Part shown: positions 1,759 to 41,945 of the stretch, piece after piece
Layout: the number at the start of each line of letters is the position of its first letter
How positions within the stretch are numbered: the stretch's first letter is position 1
Sequence record: AP017925.1
Direction: 5' to 3' (one strand)
DNA: 64,000 bases
The notes under the pieces: generated by a model
What the model was told of the DNA's origin: nothing
Database searches by the model: none
The model's input: the letters and a program-made list of their open reading frames with translations, nothing else
Program-made: the position numbers and the translations under genes

Positions 1759-2394
1759 TCAGCCCTTGGACACCATCGTCAGTGTGATTGCACGACCATC
1801 CGGCAGAAACACGCTTTCACCGAACGTCGGGAACTTGGTTTCCGAGTTCAGGTTGAAGTCTTTGATATCCCGCACCATATACGCCATCACGATCTCGTTC
1901 GTGATATGGAACATACGATCACGCACGTCAGCATAAGGCACGCTGACGATAGTATCACCAAAGTCCTTTACCGTACCTTTGTGGAACGAGAACGACATCA
2001 TGCTGTTCGGCGTGTAGCTGTAGGTCTCACCTACTTCCAGTGCCTTGATCGCTTCGTCGTGGTTCCGGTCTTTAGGCGAGAACCCGCGATAAAGCGTTTC
2101 ACGTACCGGAGGCGGTTGAATGGCTTCGAACACACGCTTGGCTTCGCGCAGTTTCGGCAACAGCGAGTAGTCAGTGACGGTGATCCAGCGTTCCACAGCT
2201 TCGAGGAGTTCTTTGTGCTGAATCAGTTCTCGGACGATGCGTTCGTCCACGTCTTCCTTCTGGAAAGTGACTTGGGGATGGGACCACACCCGGTCTTCTA
2301 ATTTGTCCCACAGTTGTTTGGTCCAGTCGTACACTTCTTCTTGCTCCAGGCCAAGCCCGGGTTGCCCGTCGAGGGACAGAACTTTCAAGCCCAT
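1759..2394 (-). CDS. putative ADP-ribosyltransferase (R-S-E type)
   Basis: TLYRG ... MSFS ... FGESVFLP matches the order and spacing of the ART R-S-E catalytic motifs. Confidence 0.55.
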   Translation of the reverse strand: MGLKVLSLDGQPGLGLEQEEVYDWTKQLWDKLEDRVWSHPQVTFQKEDVDERIVRELIQHKELLEAVERWITVTDYSLLPKLREAKRVFEAIQPPPVRETLYRGFSPKDRNHDEAIKALEVGETYSYTPNSMMSFSFHKGTVKDFGDTIVSVPYADVRDRMFHITNEIVMAYMVRDIKDFNLNSETKFPTFGESVFLPDGRAITLTMVSKG

Positions 2395-2440
2395 GATGAA
2401 TACCTGTTGGTTAGATGATGGCTATAAAATAGTTCACAGC

Positions 2441-2478
2441 GGCATAAAAAGCGGGAGAGGGCACTCACGCCCTCTCCC
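2441..2478 (-). terminator. intrinsic terminator with TTTATGCC tail
   Basis: GGGAGAGGGC/GCCCTCTCCC stem followed on the minus strand by TTTTTATGCC. Confidence 0.8.
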
Positions 2479-2479
2479 T

Positions 2480-3240
2480 TAGTCCATTGTTTCCCCAAGA
2501 CGCTCCACCAAACGTCAAGAGAATTCAACCGCAAACCAAACATCAGCCGAACGAATACCACGCTTCTATAGTGAGTGTGGGGAGAGGATACGGGCCCATC
2601 TACCTATCTTACCTCTCCCCACTACCTCGCAGGCCACCATCAAGCCTTTTGAGTAAAGTGGTAACAACCCACTCACTACCGACACTGTTACCCGCCTCAG
2701 GACGTAACCTGTGCATTGGGTCAGCTCCCAACTCAATGTCGGAACTACGCTCGTTCTAACGTAGCTTTGCTTTTTACCGCTTACCGAGATAGCGGTGTTT
2801 ACCTCGCCTCATTTGCTCGGGTCTTTGAGGTTTCGCAATTCCATATCCTTTTTTGATAGGCTGGAGGTCTGCAAGAGGTAGAGTTTCATGCCCCGGCTTC
2901 AGCTGATGCACTTTTCCCTACTCGCTCCGCACCCACAGGCTATCCCTCTAAACTAAACACCGACTGTCGCATGGCTGCTACAGCTCCGTATCGCTTGACT
3001 TTAATTGTCGACTCTAAACCACTACTACCTATCAGATCTTTGCGAGGTATGTCGGTCTTACATTCTTGCGATGGGCTTAAGCTACTCTGGTGGAGAAACC
3101 TAATCAGCAAGCTGCCGGTGTAGAAACGATCTAGAGCCGCCTGTCACTCCGAGTGACGGACAGTGTCAATTTAAAAGGATAGTCCACGAGCAATCTGAAC
3201 AAAAACATTCAGAAATGGCTAATGGGACATAACATAGGGA
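2480..3240 (-). ncRNA. candidate large structured ncRNA (~750 nt; GOLLD/ROOL-class candidate)
   Basis: No credible ORF over ~800 bp, bounded by terminators at both ends. Many stems: GTGGGGAGAGG/CCTCTCCCCAC, GGTAAC/GTTACC, ACCGCT/AGCGGT, CTACG/CGTAG, GTCACT/AGTGAC, CTGAA/TTCAG, and GACGTTT/GAGCGTC with G-U pairs on the minus strand. Family identity not verified. Confidence 0.55.
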
Positions 3241-3281
3241 AATATGATAAGGTAACTAGGTATTTACCTACTTATGCAAAC

Positions 3282-3309
3282 AAAAAAATAAAGCGGCCGA
3301 AGCCGCTTC
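3282..3309 (-). terminator. intrinsic terminator
   Basis: AAGCGGC-cgaa-GCCGCTT (cUUCGg loop on minus strand) followed by TTTATTTTTTT. Confidence 0.8.
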
Positions 3310-3311
3310 AC

Positions 3312-3437
3312 TCACCAAGACCAGTGAGCAAGTCCAGCGAGGATCAGTAAGACCACCAACAACTTGATCTTAGTCTTCTGGACCTGTACGTAGAAGTCTT
3401 TGTCCTCTACGAGGCGATCGAACACGGAACGACTCAT
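3312..3437 (-). CDS. small membrane protein (41 aa)
   Basis: Hand translation MSRSVFDRLVEDKDFYVQVQKTKIKLLVVLLILAGLAHWSW*. ATGA overlap with the upstream gene. Below the track length cut-off. Confidence 0.65.
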   Translation of the reverse strand: MSRSVFDRLVEDKDFYVQVQKTKIKLLVVLLILAGLAHWSW

Positions 3438-3625
3438 CGACGTAGCTCCTGTGCTGCTACACGTGCTTCCAGATTCGAATCCTGCAACTCTTCAACCTGC
3501 TTGAGCAGGGCAGCCATCCGGAAACCAGCATCGCGACACTCAGCGCAGTCACTGGACTGCAGATGTTCAACGAGTTGTTCGTCAGTGAACTCTCCATCGA
3601 GTTCTTTCTGATGACAGATAGTCAT
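3434..3625 (-). CDS. small Cys/His-containing hypothetical protein (63 aa)
   Basis: Track ORF 3434..3712. Start moved to MTICHQ at the ATGA overlap (3622-3625). Contains C-H...H...CxxC. Confidence 0.6.
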   Translation of the reverse strand: MTICHQKELDGEFTDEQLVEHLQSSDCAECRDAGFRMAALLKQVEELQDSNLEARVAAQELRR

Positions 3626-3852
3626 TGCCCCTCCGGCCAGACAACAGCGTCCGCACGGCCAGTGAACACAGCCCACGCGGCACGGAAGCGAGCCTTGATG
3701 CCGCAAGCGCATTGCGGTCGAGCAGGAACCCAGCGCCCGTTGATCTGGGCTTGAGTGGTATTGATAGTCTCGCAGAGACTACGCAGTCCCCACATGGTAG
3801 GTTCGTGTTTGAATTCCGGCTTCAGTTTCTTGAACCATTGCAGCAACTTCAT
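3622..3852 (-). CDS. hypothetical protein (76 aa)
   Basis: ATGA-coupled on both sides. Confidence 0.7.
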   Translation of the reverse strand: MKLLQWFKKLKPEFKHEPTMWGLRSLCETINTTQAQINGRWVPARPQCACGIKARFRAAWAVFTGRADAVVWPEGQ

Positions 3853-4301
3853 TGTTTCTCTCCTGCGTTTGCCAGTATGGCGGCTGACTTGTTAAATACT
3901 TCTTTGATAACATCCGCGAGCGCCTTCAGGCCGTCGGGAGTATCGACGTGGTAGCTGCCGCAGGCGAAGCCTTTGAACCACTCGCGCGGGCTCGGGCAAC
4001 CACAGTGACCTGCAACGCGCACAACGCGACCGTGGGTAGCGTGCAAAGCTTCTGCGGTATCGACGTCGAGTCCGGGACCTTCAACCATCCAGTAATACCA
4101 GCCGCGAGTGAATTTCCAGCCATGCAGTACGCCCAGTACCGATGTCTTCACTTCACCGGATTGGCGGCGAAGCATATCAGCCAGCCATTCGGGTGGTTGA
4201 CCAGCATCTTCTTGCAGCGTCGGAATACCGGCTGCTTTGAGTTCGGCACGTAGAATATCATCGGTGTCTGCGTGATCACCGGCTCTGTTGGGGAAACCCA
4301 T
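3849..4301 (-). CDS. hypothetical protein (150 aa)
   Basis: RBS GGGAGTAG. Protein-like composition, with WYYW and HCGCP motifs. Confidence 0.75.
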   Translation of the reverse strand: MGFPNRAGDHADTDDILRAELKAAGIPTLQEDAGQPPEWLADMLRRQSGEVKTSVLGVLHGWKFTRGWYYWMVEGPGLDVDTAEALHATHGRVVRVAGHCGCPSPREWFKGFACGSYHVDTPDGLKALADVIKEVFNKSAAILANAGEKQ

Positions 4302-4339
4302 TTCTACTCCCTAAAGTAAGTTAACGGCATAAAAGGAAT

Positions 4340-4592
4340 GCAGGGGGTGGCGAAACCAAGGCTAACCCGTCCCTGATCCCGCCACCCTTCTCCCACACCG
4401 CCCTCACCGCGTGCTCGCGGCCAGAGGACTACATTGGGAAGGCTGCGTCGACAGACGCTCCGGCGGCTAGCGGGCCGCACCATGGCGTCAGCTGTCTTCC
4501 CTGCGTGGGGAGCTTTGCGGCCCGCGATCTCGCGAGGCGCGCTCCCCATCGTTCAGCGCGGGCGAGTCTCTCAATCCCGCCCGCGCCTGAAC
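4340..4592 (-). ncRNA. candidate GC-rich structured ncRNA (~250 nt) at the 3' end of the tRNA array
   Basis: Stems GTTCAG-CGCGGGCG/CGCCCGCG-CTGAAC, GGGGAGC/GCTCCCC, GGGAAG/CTTCCC, a 17-bp GGGTGGCGGGATCAGGG/CCTTGGTTTCGCCACCC hairpin with G-U pairs on the minus strand, and a possible long-range GCAGG/CCTGC pairing. Visibly more GC-rich than flanking DNA. Confidence 0.6.
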
Positions 4593-4610
4593 ACTTCACT
4601 ACAACAATAC

Positions 4611-4718
4611 TGATCCCTCGGGTTAGGATTCGAACCTACGACCTGCGTCTGGTATGGTAGGCCGGCCGCTGAGGACCCGCCTTGGTGACGCCGCTCTGCC
4701 GGACTGAGCTACCGAGAG
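4611..4718 (-). tRNA. tRNA-like RNA with a 37-nt insert in place of the anticodon loop (identity undetermined; ends UCA, not CCA)
   Basis: Acceptor CTCTCGG/CCGAGGG, TA, D-arm GCTC-AGTCCGGCA-GAGC, anticodon stem GCGTC/GACGC enclosing 37 nt (4650..4686), variable region AGGTC, T-arm GTAGG-TTCGAAT-CCTA(A)C. Confidence 0.7.
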
Positions 4719-4733
4719 TATGCTACGGAAAAC

Positions 4734-4809
4734 TGGCTCCAAGGGCTGGGTTCGAACCAGCGACCAACGGCTTAACAGGCCGCTGCTCTACCGACTGAGC
4801 TACCTCGGA
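4734..4809 (-). tRNA. trnN: tRNA-Asn (anticodon GTT)
   Basis: 76-nt canonical cloverleaf: TCCGAGG/CCTTGGA, D-arm GCTC/GAGC, anticodon loop CT-GTT-AA, T-loop TTCGAAC, encoded CCA. Confidence 0.97.
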
Positions 4810-4822
4810 ATACTACTAAACT

Positions 4823-4933
4823 TGGTGCAAAAGGTACGATTCGAACGTACGAAGTCTTTTCCCATCCTTAGATGAGTCACCTTGTGATGATACGGTTGTA
4901 TCTCACTGCCTTAAACCACTCAGCCACTTTCGC
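4823..4933 (-). tRNA. class II (Leu/Tyr/Ser-like) tRNA-like RNA with a 25-nt insert in place of the anticodon loop
   Basis: Acceptor GCGAAAG/CTTTTGC, discriminator A, CCA. Class II-style D-arm TGGCTGAGTGGTTTAAGGCA, T-arm GTACG-TTCGAAT-CGTAC. Stem GTGAG/CTCAT encloses 25 nt (4877..4901) and is followed by a long variable arm. Total 111 nt. Confidence 0.7.
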
Positions 4934-4949
4934 TTGGAAACTACACTCC

Positions 4950-5200
4950 TAGAGCCAGAAGCAAGGCAGCTAACGGCGTCTCCATGACGGTTCTGCTGCC
5001 GCTGCCGAGCTAGTGGCCTAAGGGCTATAGTCTCGCTGCTAACAAATCCATAACTTGAGAGTTGCGCTGATGAACGCTTCTCCCCTACACTTTAACGAGG
5101 ATCATCACTCCTCGCAACTAGAGGCCTTTCGGCGGTAATCCTAACGCTGCCATCCCGGTCAGGGGATGGCCAGCAAACTCGAAGAAAACTAGAGCAGCTA
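4950..5200 (-). ncRNA. candidate structured RNA or leader upstream of the tRNA array
   Basis: Stems GCTG-GCCATCCC/GGGATGGC-AGC, GCC-GAAA-GGC (GNRA loop), GAGGA/TCCTC, and GGCAGC/GCTGCC enclosing CGTC/GACG. No credible ORF. Confidence 0.35.
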
Positions 5201-5288
5201 CTCCAGAGAGTCCTCAAGTGATAGGATACAGATACAGTGTGAGTCTCTGCATGAAATAAAGACAACGTGTATTTTTTTACTCTACTTC

Positions 5289-6164
5289 TTAGTTTGCGCC
5301 AACGAGCCAATTAGCCAAACGCTTGATACCCGCGAGCAACTTGCCGAAGATACCTTGCGGTTTGGACGTAGTAGCAGCGCTAACGGCTTCAGGTTGAATT
5401 GCTGGCTCTGCAACCACTGCTTTCTCTTCAGAGGCAGGAACTTCCGGCTCCTGTTCTACAGGATCGCGAAGTACGATCCCGTCACCGAAGGCCGGGTACG
5501 GTGCTGCGTCGTAGTCTTCCTGATCCATCAGAAGCTCGTTAGTCCACTGGTACGTGGCGTGGAAGCCGCTGAGGATATCGAGCCACCAAACGCTACCAGT
5601 CGGAGACGGCGTGATGGCGATCTTGTGCTCAGTGCCTTCTTCGTCAGTGACGATCAGGCAAGGCATGGCCAGCCACTTGTACTGCTCCTTGATTGTGCGG
5701 CTCTTGAATGCAAACTCCACACGGATGTCGTGCGGCTTCAGGAAGGTGTTTTCGAACTGCTTGTTTACCTTAAGCGAGCGGAACACCGATTCGTATTCTT
5801 GCTTCGCCAGCGCCTCCTTGTTCTTCACGCAGGAGATGCCGAGGTTGCACACAGCATCGCAGAACACGAACCAGCGGTTGAAGCGCTCGGCGAATTCCTT
5901 TGGCGCGAGTTTTTCCTTCTTGATGGCGGACAGTTGGTCGGCCACGATGTGCGGCAAAGCAGCCACGAACTCGTCGCGGTCGAAGTAGTAACCGTCGGCT
6001 TGTGCACGCTCTTCATCGATGTTCTTCTGGACTTCTTCCAGCGTACCGAGGATGCGGTTGTAATTCGGATCGATGTGCTCGATCGCTGCAATTTCTTCAT
6101 TCACCGCAGCCACGCCTGCTGCAATGTCGTCTTGTACTTCCTTCGGGATATTGGAATCACTCAT
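5289..6164 (-). CDS. hypothetical protein (~291 aa)
   Basis: Start moved to MSDSNIP (6164) because the longer track ORF runs through a terminator. Codon usage matches other phage genes. Confidence 0.8.
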   Translation of the reverse strand: MSDSNIPKEVQDDIAAGVAAVNEEIAAIEHIDPNYNRILGTLEEVQKNIDEERAQADGYYFDRDEFVAALPHIVADQLSAIKKEKLAPKEFAERFNRWFVFCDAVCNLGISCVKNKEALAKQEYESVFRSLKVNKQFENTFLKPHDIRVEFAFKSRTIKEQYKWLAMPCLIVTDEEGTEHKIAITPSPTGSVWWLDILSGFHATYQWTNELLMDQEDYDAAPYPAFGDGIVLRDPVEQEPEVPASEEKAVVAEPAIQPEAVSAATTSKPQGIFGKLLAGIKRLANWLVGAN

Positions 6165-6239
6165 GATGGGTCTCTGGGTTAGGGTGCAGTGAGAAGTTGC
6201 ACCAAGATGATAAGGGCTACTGGTTAAAACTAGATTGAC

Positions 6240-6270
6240 GGCATAAAGGGGAGGCAAAACGCCTCCCCTC
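6240..6270 (-). terminator. intrinsic terminator with TTTATGCC tail
   Basis: AGGGGAGGC/GCCTCCCCT stem next to GGCATAAA on the plus strand. Confidence 0.8.
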
Positions 6271-14746: not shown

Positions 14747-14827
14747 TTTTATTCCGCCACGAATATGAGTTAAAAGATACTCGACCCCTTATAAGGGTCG
14801 TAAGCTCATAGTAATCTCAGTCGCAAC

Positions 14828-14860
14828 GGCATAAACGGCGGTGGGGGAAACCCACCGCCT
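14828..14860 (-). terminator. intrinsic terminator with TTTATGCC tail
   Basis: GGCATAAA-C-GGCGGTGGG-ggaaa-CCCACCGCC. Confidence 0.8.
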
Positions 14861-20726: not shown

Positions 20727-20757
20727 AGGCCACGCTATAAAGCGTGGCCTTTATGCC
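20727..20757 (+). terminator. hairpin with plus-oriented TTTATGCC tail
   Basis: AGGCCACGCT-ataa-AGCGTGGCCT-TTATGCC between two minus-strand genes. Confidence 0.6.
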
Positions 20758-20764
20758 GCTACTC

Positions 20765-27003: not shown

Positions 27004-27107
27004 TATTCGACCTTGTCTAACTGGTTGAAGAAATAAGCGTAGCACGAGATACGTAAATACCTCGCGCCCATAAAATTGGGAAGCTAAAAAAATACAGGAG
27101 AAACGAC

Positions 27108-27143
27108 GGCATAAAGGCCCGGGGAAAACCCGGGCCTGTTATG
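27108..27143. terminator. symmetric terminator after nrdB
   Basis: GGCATAAA-GGCCCGGG-gaaaa-CCCGGGCC-TGTTATG. Confidence 0.8.
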
Positions 27144-37390: not shown

Positions 37391-37427
37391 AATAAAGCCC
37401 GGGGATTTCTCCCCGGGCGTTTATGCC
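37391..37427. terminator. symmetric terminator
   Basis: AATAAA-GCCCGGGGA-tttc-TCCCCGGGC-GTTTATGCC. Confidence 0.8.
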
Positions 37428-37433
37428 GCTAGA

Positions 37434-41856: not shown

Positions 41857-41945
41857 GGTAGGGTCTTTTCGAAAGGGATGCCATACAAAACCCAACTCGT
41901 GTAATAAACGGCATAAAGCGAGTGGGTTTCCCCACTCGCCCACAC

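Follow-up and report, generated by a model that had tools for sequence, protein, structure and literature searches.

A predicted RNA-only operon with non-decoding, tRNA-shaped units in phiKZ-related Ralstonia jumbo phages

We analyzed a 64,000-nucleotide (nt) stretch of phage DNA from sequence record AP017925.1 (hereafter the window) and describe an array of RNA units on its minus strand, positions 5250-4334, that contains no protein gene. In order, it comprises a leader RNA, a tRNA-like unit (TL1), tRNA-Asn, a second tRNA-like unit (TL2) and a GC-rich RNA. Bases 4300-5300 of the window match Ralstonia phage RP12 (AP017924, 279.8 kb) and RP31 at 100% identity. RP12 is a jumbo phage related to phiKZ, and a single tRNA, Asn(GTT), was reported for it (PMC5468394). 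Between the open reading frames (ORFs) ORF131 and ORF132, the GenBank annotation lists tRNA-Asn and nothing else. Neither TL1 nor TL2 is able to decode, and this tRNA island holds more non-decoding than decoding RNA. Comparison of homologues indicates that TL2 is no decaying gene but a tRNA mimic under selection, one that does not decode and whose anticodon arm has been rebuilt, and that it very likely has a job of its own.

ARAGORN and Infernal/Rfam searches, which a first-pass annotation of this DNA had proposed as checks, confirmed tRNA-Asn, placed TL1 above the gathering threshold and made TL2 visible to intron-aware ARAGORN. Standard ARAGORN called tRNA-Asn alone in the region, and this gene scored 70.9 bits against the Rfam tRNA model (RF00005, gathering score 29). 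Rfam at the gathering threshold also reported positions 4826-4933, within TL1, as a tRNA (35.8 bits, E = 8e-4 for the whole window). For TL2 in RP12, cmscan against Rfam gave no report and standard ARAGORN no call. Intron-aware ARAGORN, applied to the whole window, gave TL1 and TL2 as extra calls and no others. When both strands of the 64-kb window were scanned for T arms, i.e., a 5-bp stem with a UUCRANY loop, matches were confined to TL1, tRNA-Asn and TL2, plus one weak, distant match (4/5). Since the T arms and the intron-aware calls are confined to these units, three tRNA-shaped units within 320 nt of one strand are not a matter of chance. TL1 and TL2 have the cloverleaf arms of a canonical decoding tRNA (RF00005), but the 7-nt anticodon loop with U33 and an anticodon shared among homologues are absent. 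The first-pass claim that both odd units keep acceptor, D and T arms and lack a normal anticodon loop was borne out by the folds, by Rfam and by alignment.

In RP12, TL2 has acceptor, D and T helices and a 5-bp anticodon stem, with 37 nt between the two strands of that stem. In this insert, which takes the place of the anticodon loop, an internal loop and a hairpin are combined with a tail that contains ACCA. Homologues of TL2 are present in phages FLC4-3B and FLC1-1B, both Ralstonia phages, and in Burkholderia phage FLC9 (42.1 bits against Rfam tRNA), which gives four sequences from three genera when RP12 is included. The anticodon stem is paired at 5/5 positions in 4/4 sequences, with three pair types at one position and two pair types at two positions, and its strands lie 37-46 nt apart. 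All four inserts form a hairpin; the hairpin sequences differ, and NCCA directly follows each, in the segments ACCAUACCA (RP12), ACCACUA (FLC4-3B), UCCACUA (FLC1-1B) and GCCACCA (FLC9). The D stem does not vary among the four sequences; partial covariation is seen in the T and acceptor stems. Core identity between genera is 76-85% for TL2 versus 79-86% for tRNA-Asn in comparisons with RP12; the genomes as wholes are only about 35% alignable, at 77% identity (PMC11530567). The argument that the loss of the anticodon is not random decay therefore stands for TL2, given four sequences from three genera, covarying stems and a core about as conserved as that of tRNA-Asn. Alignment of syntenic regions, another proposed check, showed compensatory changes in the anticodon stem of TL2. 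In a third Ralstonia-phage lineage, the 283-kb uncultured contig IMGVR_UViG_3300049460_000312 (hereafter the UViG contig), a plain tRNA-Asn stands before the GC-rich RNA.

In TL1, the acceptor is paired at 7/7 positions and carries G3.U70, A73 and an encoded ACCA end. Its minimum free energy fold replaces the anticodon arm with a 9-bp helix and a 4-nt loop, followed by a long extra arm and a perfect T arm. An alternative fold, taken from the Rfam alignment, has a 5-bp anticodon stem and a 25-nt loop, and neither fold contains a 7-nt anticodon loop. Its long-variable-arm (type II) D arm most resembles those of phage tRNA-Ser genes. G3.U70 and A73 are the main alanine identity elements, and the bacterial set excludes the anticodon (PMC9976931); compared with that set, TL1 is without the other two of the four bacterial alanine acceptor-stem elements. 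TL1 is known from RP12 and RP31 alone and is identical in both. It is a lineage-specific, serine-type (type II) tRNA-shaped RNA with a closed anticodon arm and an alanine-type acceptor end, and its standing is uncertain: it may be functional or a product of recent remodeling.

No ORF within 4326-5310 has a conserved translation, including an 81-aa ORF inside the GC-rich RNA, whereas small ORFs just downstream of the operon do have conserved translations. The absence of conserved ORFs inside, next to conserved small neighbors, supports the description of this locus as RNA-only. That description, made in the first-pass annotation, is borne out: the inner ORFs are unconserved, both flanking RNAs covary, and the layout is syntenic in three lineages. 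All units named there were found in place and in order on the minus strand (Table 1), and the four quoted spacers are present exactly, each with GTAG. The 5' structured RNA likewise exists, but it extends over about 5250-4938 and not, as first given, over 5200-4950.

Table 1. Features of the RNA array, its punctuation motif and the arrays of related phages
Feature	Position in the window, or order of units	Strand	Basis
Promoter-like box GTAAAAAAATACAC	5267-5280	minus	Motif and conservation; putative promoter function
5' leader structured RNA, ~310 nt, no known family	4938-5250	minus	Conservation, covariation
TL1 (tRNA-like 1), type-II-style, no anticodon loop, ACCA end encoded	4823-4933	minus	Rfam tRNA, 35.8 bits
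Canonical tRNA-Asn (GTT), CCA encoded	4734-4809	minus	ARAGORN; Rfam, 70.9 bits; GenBank
TL2 (tRNA-like 2), conserved tRNA mimic	4611-4718	minus	Homologues in FLC4-3B, FLC1-1B, FLC9
Conserved spacer GTATTGTTGTAG, TL2 to GC-rich RNA	4599-4610	minus	Identical in RP12 and FLC4-3B/FLC1-1B
3' GC-rich structured RNA, ~265 nt, no known family	4334-4598	minus	Conserved in three lineages
Punctuation motif TTTATGCCG, late-type TATG promoter look-alike for ORF131	4325-4333	minus	10 exact window copies
Further TTTATGCCG sites, examples	2440-2448, 6239-6247, 14827-14835, 27107-27115, 41909-41917	minus	Exact match
Further TTTATGCCG sites, examples	20750-20758, 37420-37428	plus	Exact match
RP12 array	leader, TL1, Asn, TL2, GC-rich RNA	coding strand	
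FLC Ralstonia-phage array	leader, Gln, Asp, Asn, Tyr, TL2, GC-rich RNA	coding strand	
UViG array	leader, Asp, Asn, GC-rich RNA	coding strand	

The leader RNA is conserved in RP12, FLC4-3B/FLC1-1B and the UViG contig. RNAalifold, applied to the four-sequence alignment (RP12, FLC4-3B, FLC1-1B and UViG), predicted 69 pairs with 95.9% of cells paired, and 18 pairs are changed on both sides, compared with 0-3 in slid controls. In its final helix, a stretch near 5000 pairs with the first spacer, such that GTAG lies inside the stem. For the GC-rich RNA, 84 pairs were predicted, with 92.4% of cells paired and 12 double changes (1-4 in slid controls); the loop of its 5' hairpin is conserved, and its long 3' hairpin shows compensatory changes. 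These pairing and covariation figures for the two RNAs are encouraging, not decisive. Searches against Rfam at E <= 10, in the window and its relatives, gave zero matches for the leader RNA and no family, only chance-level matches, for the GC-rich RNA; no Rfam group I or II introns or ribozymes were found within the operon region. A reading of the leader RNA as a transfer-messenger RNA (tmRNA), which a conserved stretch readable as a short frame with a stop might suggest, was dropped because the candidate frame stretch sits in a covarying helix; in addition, the lineages without TL1 have no tRNA-like partner for it, and ARAGORN found no tmRNA. Metagenomes and genomes scanned for motifs of the GC-rich and leader RNAs yielded nothing beyond chance matches within coding DNA, and a 15-mer scan of viral contigs gave 109 matches, mostly random.

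The leader RNA, the array and the GC-rich RNA are syntenic in RP12/RP31, FLC4-3B/FLC1-1B and the UViG contig, and the tRNA cassette varies between these constant flanks (Table 1). In every lineage, the leader RNA is adjoined by a tRNA-shaped unit, and the GC-rich RNA always follows a tRNA-shaped unit and the same spacer, whether that unit is TL2 or tRNA-Asn. The spacer, GTATTGTTGTAG, does not differ between RP12 and FLC4-3B/FLC1-1B, and in UViG it stands directly after tRNA-Asn. We infer a processing role for it. GTAG or GTAGTAG spacers also occur in the FLC4-3B and FLC9 arrays, but not in every spacer. Relatives sought by dCTP deaminase alone amounted to RP12 only, and a search with an alignment of four deaminases gave 61 loci, none of which, besides RP12 and UViG, had an array; ORF132 is limited to the same clade. 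The operon has so far been seen in few phages, namely RP12/RP31, FLC4-3B and FLC1-1B, and in one uncultured contig; TL2 is known also from FLC9.

Upstream of the array, the box GTAAAAAAATACAC lies ~22 nt before the G (5250) of a conserved CATG/(N)ATG, and this G5250 is the predicted transcript start. The window contains the box just once in exact form. It hardly varies between RP12 and FLC4-3B/FLC1-1B and differs by one base in UViG; a similar box precedes the FLC9 array. In phiKZ, middle promoters carry AAanTTACc centered near -24, and late promoters carry TATG with G as +1 (PMC4666361). GTAAAAAAATACAC matches 6/8 specified positions of the middle motif, centered ~22 nt before the G, and no sigma-70-type promoter was found. 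At the downstream end lies TTTATGCCG, with 10 exact copies in the window (<1 expected); nine of the ten directly follow a GC-rich hairpin, and all ten are located 9-80 nt upstream of a same-strand ORF start. Given this copy number and position and the TATG of phiKZ late promoters, TTTATGCCG is best read as standard punctuation, in which a hairpin would close the upstream unit and a late-type promoter would serve the next gene, here ORF131. This end of the array had been called a terminator. This was half right: a hairpin would end the unit, and TTTATGCCG is a genome-wide motif and a late-promoter look-alike, not a private terminator. We infer all promoter assignments, for TTTATGCCG and GTAAAAAAATACAC alike, from motifs. 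The combination of hairpin and TTTATGCCG could be used for mapping RP12 transcription units.

With somewhat better than even confidence, we propose that the array is a polycistronic, non-coding operon driven by a middle promoter, that its units are matured like tRNAs and in this way free the flanking RNAs, and that TL2 is a selected mimic acting in trans. The observed grounds are the anatomy, the conservation, the covariation, the absence of coding and the lack of a coherent splice model; the promoter, the processing enzymes, the stability of the products and their action in trans are proposed from these. Transcription would probably begin at a middle-class phage promoter, and the primary transcript would run from the ~310-nt leader RNA through a changeable cassette, made up of tRNAs and tRNA-shaped RNAs, to the ~265-nt GC-rich RNA. 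The units keep the features read by host tRNA-maturation enzymes, i.e., a 7-bp acceptor stem stacked on the T arm, the D/T elbow and, in most cases, an encoded CCA, which suggests that they are cut out like tRNAs. RNase P would make the 5' cut, and an endonuclease would cut on the 3' side, in the U-rich, GTAG-containing spacers; the same cuts would delimit the leader RNA at its 3' end and the GC-rich RNA at its 5' end. There is a precedent in the bacterial YrlA tRNA mimics, on which RNase P, the CCA-adding enzyme, TruB and DusA act (PMC4201824). The anticodon loop of TL2 would have been rebuilt as an internal loop, a hairpin and a single-stranded NCCA, and TL2 would most likely act in trans as a stable, tRNA-shaped RNA that presents the rebuilt arm to a partner.

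One option raised in the first-pass annotation was that the tRNA-like units are punctuation marks that release the flanking RNAs. The anatomy fits this option, with a tRNA-shaped unit beside both flanking RNAs, but the conserved arm of TL2 is left unexplained. In known cases of tRNA punctuation and in mascRNA, a tRNA-shaped module likewise stands beside another RNA, and an RNase P or RNase Z cut defines the end of that RNA; those systems are organellar or eukaryotic. Because ordinary tRNAs do the same job in the UViG lineage, punctuation alone is not the whole reason for the TL2 arm.

Several observations weigh against the proposed operon with a selected TL2. TL1 has no homologue beyond RP12/RP31 that would show selection on it. 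Single-sequence folding energies are ordinary, with z-scores of -1.9 (TL1) and -0.5 (TL2). In the TL2 of RP12, one T-stem position is unpaired, one junction nucleotide is extra, and UCA stands in place of CCA; both copies from the FLC Ralstonia phages have two non-pairing acceptor positions, and in FLC9 two junction nucleotides are extra. The UViG lineage lacks TL2, which is thus dispensable there. The comparative set for TL2 is small (four sequences, three genera), and the structures of the flanking RNAs, drawn from three independent lineages, were predicted from the same alignments on which they were tested.

A serious, although unlikely, alternative is that TL1 and TL2 are decaying tRNA pseudogenes, which persist through fast turnover of the array or as residual cutting sites. 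This would fit with TL1 being a singleton and TL2 being imperfect in every lineage and missing from one. The arrays are in flux, with cassette content that differs among close relatives and tRNA-Asn genes that differ between FLC4-3B and FLC1-1B, and FLC9 has several ragged tRNA-like units with ordinary folding energies. However, decay does not readily account for a TL2 core that is about as conserved between genera as tRNA-Asn, in genomes that align as poorly as noted above, or for an anticodon stem that is kept fully paired through compensatory changes. The hairpin of TL2 keeps its form while its sequence changes, NCCA is kept, and all arms of TL1 but the anticodon arm are intact.

We consider it quite unlikely that the locus encodes one large RNA similar to GOLLD, in which the leader and GC-rich RNAs would be the 5' and 3' domains and the tRNAs and mimics would lie in the linker, tethered or released. 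GOLLD is a phage-encoded, non-coding RNA at a tRNA island, with a 5' domain, a linker that sometimes contains tRNAs and a conserved 3' domain. Here too, a variable tRNA cassette always lies between two covarying structured domains, and a conserved non-coding RNA of ~800 nt is located 1 kb away; the likeness between operon and GOLLD is one of architecture only. The GOLLD and ROOL covariance models, run with permissive filters, gave zero matches at E <= 10 on 4200-5400 and 2300-3450 of the window and on the loci L002, L113 and L190 of relatives. A pairing of the leader with the GC-rich RNA was considered and rejected, because the longest conserved inter-domain run, scored column-wise, is 8 and the maximum in column-shuffled controls is 9. 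The pieces total ~575 nt, less than GOLLD, and, unlike GOLLD and ROOL, they are smaller, show no supported inter-domain pairing and belong to jumbo phages of a different host clade, Burkholderiaceae.

A more speculative version of the proposed operon, to which we assign a low probability, is that nucleus-forming, phiKZ-related jumbo phages of Burkholderiaceae have an ornate RNA of two domains, laid out like GOLLD but belonging to a new family, which carries tRNAs and purpose-built mimics or sets them free. TL2, with its conserved hairpin-NCCA arm, would then represent a new class of viral tRNA-shaped effector and would engage a host or phage factor that reads both the elbow and the 3'-end-like CCA. 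TL1-type units, with a closed anticodon arm and an alanine-type acceptor end, might serve as charged amino-acid carriers outside decoding.

The idea that TL1 and TL2 are anti-defense decoys, which soak up a host tRNA-targeting effector or toxin and spare the real tRNAs, is in our view distinctly improbable. RP12 encodes a putative RNA ligase and an RtcB-like protein elsewhere in its genome (record positions 196,759-198,051 and 201,963-203,231; supplementary gene table, PMC5468394). This suggests that RP12 repairs or joins cleaved RNA and fits with pressure on the tRNA pool. Several Burkholderiaceae jumbo phages have tRNA-shaped genes without an anticodon, and the conserved NCCA that TL2 exposes is the sequence with which a tRNA ends at its 3' side. 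On the other hand, the loop that anticodon nucleases recognize and cut is missing from TL1 and TL2, so a decoy for these enzymes, as the first-pass annotation had suggested, is unlikely. No defense or anti-defense gene lies beside the operon, the neighbors have no Pfam or PHROG function, and no link leads from the units to any particular effector. The units may instead be decoys for factors that bind the acceptor or the elbow.

Equally, the earlier suggestion that the units are tRNAs with short introns, whose inserts would be removed and whose halves would be joined, e.g., by the RtcB-like ligase of the phage, to give working tRNAs, was not borne out, and we regard it as very improbable. Both units are called by intron-aware ARAGORN, the phage has the RtcB-like gene, and the 5' side of the loop in the alternative TL1 fold has U33 and a purine at 37. 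However, ARAGORN -i assigned Gly(ACC) i33, Met(CAT) i39 and Leu(GAG) i33 to TL2 homologues, with non-canonical intron sites. Splicing is unsupported because homologues receive different anticodons and inconsistent sites, and in TL1 the intron would have to lie within the anticodon itself. Removal of the TL2 hairpin leaves a single-stranded remainder of 10-14 nt, never 7, and inspection revealed no bulge-helix-bulge geometry. A search of the published RP12 table with a few RNA-enzyme terms, splicing and endonuclease not among them, found no insert-cutting enzyme.

A role as a Y-RNA-like partner of a Ro/Rsr protein has a next to negligible probability: YrlA (RF02553) is indeed a tRNA mimic without an anticodon, but the matches to it (29.8, 28.2 and 26.5 bits among them; 29.8 bits in the window and 19-28 bits in relatives) lie below the gathering score of 69 and each run from the T arm of one unit into the D arm of the unit after it, a dimeric-tRNA false positive named by the YrlA authors (PMC4201824), and we rejected them as this artifact. 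Like TL1 and TL2, YrlA is non-decoding and retains the acceptor, D and T arms; on its anticodon side it continues into a helix that binds protein (PMC4201824). YrlA is circularly permuted relative to tRNA and is encoded beside rsr, whereas TL1 and TL2 have tRNA topology and lie inside a tRNA array. The terms TROVE, Ro and Rsr do not occur in the published RP12/RP31 gene tables, and the ORFs next to the operon have no Pfam match.

The tRNA-like domain of tmRNA resembles TL1 in G3.U70 and A73, the T arm, the ACCA end and the lack of an anticodon. It differs in that TL1 has a full D arm and no attached tag reading frame or pseudoknot ring, and neither ARAGORN nor Rfam detected a tmRNA in the region. 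The tRNA cluster of phage T4 includes species 1 and 2 (rnaC/rnaD), stable non-tRNA RNAs of unknown function. These are small stable RNAs co-transcribed with phage tRNAs and matured by host tRNA-processing enzymes, much as is proposed for the units described here. They are not known to share a remodeled anticodon arm of the TL2 type.

Phage tRNA islands are usually read as spare parts for codon usage or anti-defense, and this island reads otherwise. The retention of TL2, rebuilt anticodon arm included, in three genera implies that jumbo phages have a use for a tRNA shape beyond translation. The layout is a second, independent example of structured RNA domains around tRNAs, a theme known from GOLLD, whose function is unknown. 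For genome annotation, a class of phage genes is overlooked by standard tRNA finders. With short, well-defined units and phage-host pairs in culture, the question is directly approachable.

The array of FLC9 (LC667451, L125; positions 2435-3990) has no annotated tRNA. ARAGORN found eight, and six further units with T arms lie between them. Among these are the TL2 homologue, a unit with a tetraloop-closed anticodon stem (29.2 bits as tRNA), a type-II-like unit whose anticodon stem has 8 bp and whose extra arm is very long, and pairs of very short units without a normal anticodon arm. Nearly all FLC9 spacers contain GTAGTAG, and a further unannotated GC-rich stretch of ~470 nt (3990-4460) follows the array.

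Another unannotated tRNA-shaped gene was detected in BcepSaruman (MK552140, L126; ~2046-2125, minus strand), 13 nt past a thioredoxin stop codon. In this gene, the acceptor is paired at 7/7 positions, a loop of only three nucleotides closes the 5-bp anticodon stem, and CCA is encoded; the eight tRNAs at this locus are likewise unannotated. The units of FLC9 and BcepSaruman indicate that anticodon-less tRNA-shaped genes are recurrent in Burkholderiaceae jumbo phages. A BcepSaruman spacer shares the 9-mer ACCAUACCA with RP12 TL2, after a hairpin in both. We regard this as a coincidence: the 9-mer has one window copy and was found in 17/100 shuffles, and the spacer does not fold unusually well. 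Two unrelated IMG/VR contigs from uncultured phages, one GC-rich and one AT-rich (L127, 3518-3634; L128, 2049-2170), contain tRNA-shaped genes with inserts of ~44-45 nt in the anticodon loop that standard ARAGORN missed. Insert-bearing tRNA-like genes may be more widespread in phages.

FLC4-3B and FLC1-1B, both recovered from compost of leaf litter, have genomes that are 99% identical (PMC11530567). Their tRNA-Asn genes (4497-4572 in both L002 and L003) are only ~71% identical, and that of FLC4-3B is 99% identical to the FLC9 copy (L125, 2541-2616). All three phages are from Sendai, Japan. These tRNA-Asn identities suggest a recent exchange of cassettes between phages of different hosts. In FLC4-3B, a gap without annotation that lies ~6 kb from the array was also found to contain a tRNA-Arg(ACG) (L190, 3497-3568, minus strand; record positions 122,496-122,567). 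This tRNA corresponds to the fifth one mentioned in the FLC paper and scores 28.6 bits in Rfam, slightly below gathering.

Immediately downstream of the operon, ORF131 (3849-4301, minus strand) has no counterpart in the FLC phages or UViG, whereas ORF129, ORF130, ORF132 and ORF133 are conserved in relatives. As ORF131 lacks counterparts while its neighbors are kept, the downstream boundary of the operon is a variable spot. Pfam and PHROG gave no function for the neighboring proteins and thus no functional clue.

One kb downstream of the operon, between ORF128 and ORF127, lies the ~800-nt conserved non-coding stretch mentioned above (2445-3262, minus strand). Its counterparts are located in FLC4-3B (L190, 7396-8200, minus strand), FLC1-1B (L003, 2530-3300, minus strand) and L130 (13975-14780, plus strand). 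No Rfam family, GOLLD and ROOL included, matched this stretch. Identity is 73-75% over ~800 nt in all three lineages, and 27 of the 209 predicted pairs show compensatory changes. The stretch terminates in a hairpin and TTTATGCCG, and it is a candidate for a new large structured phage RNA.

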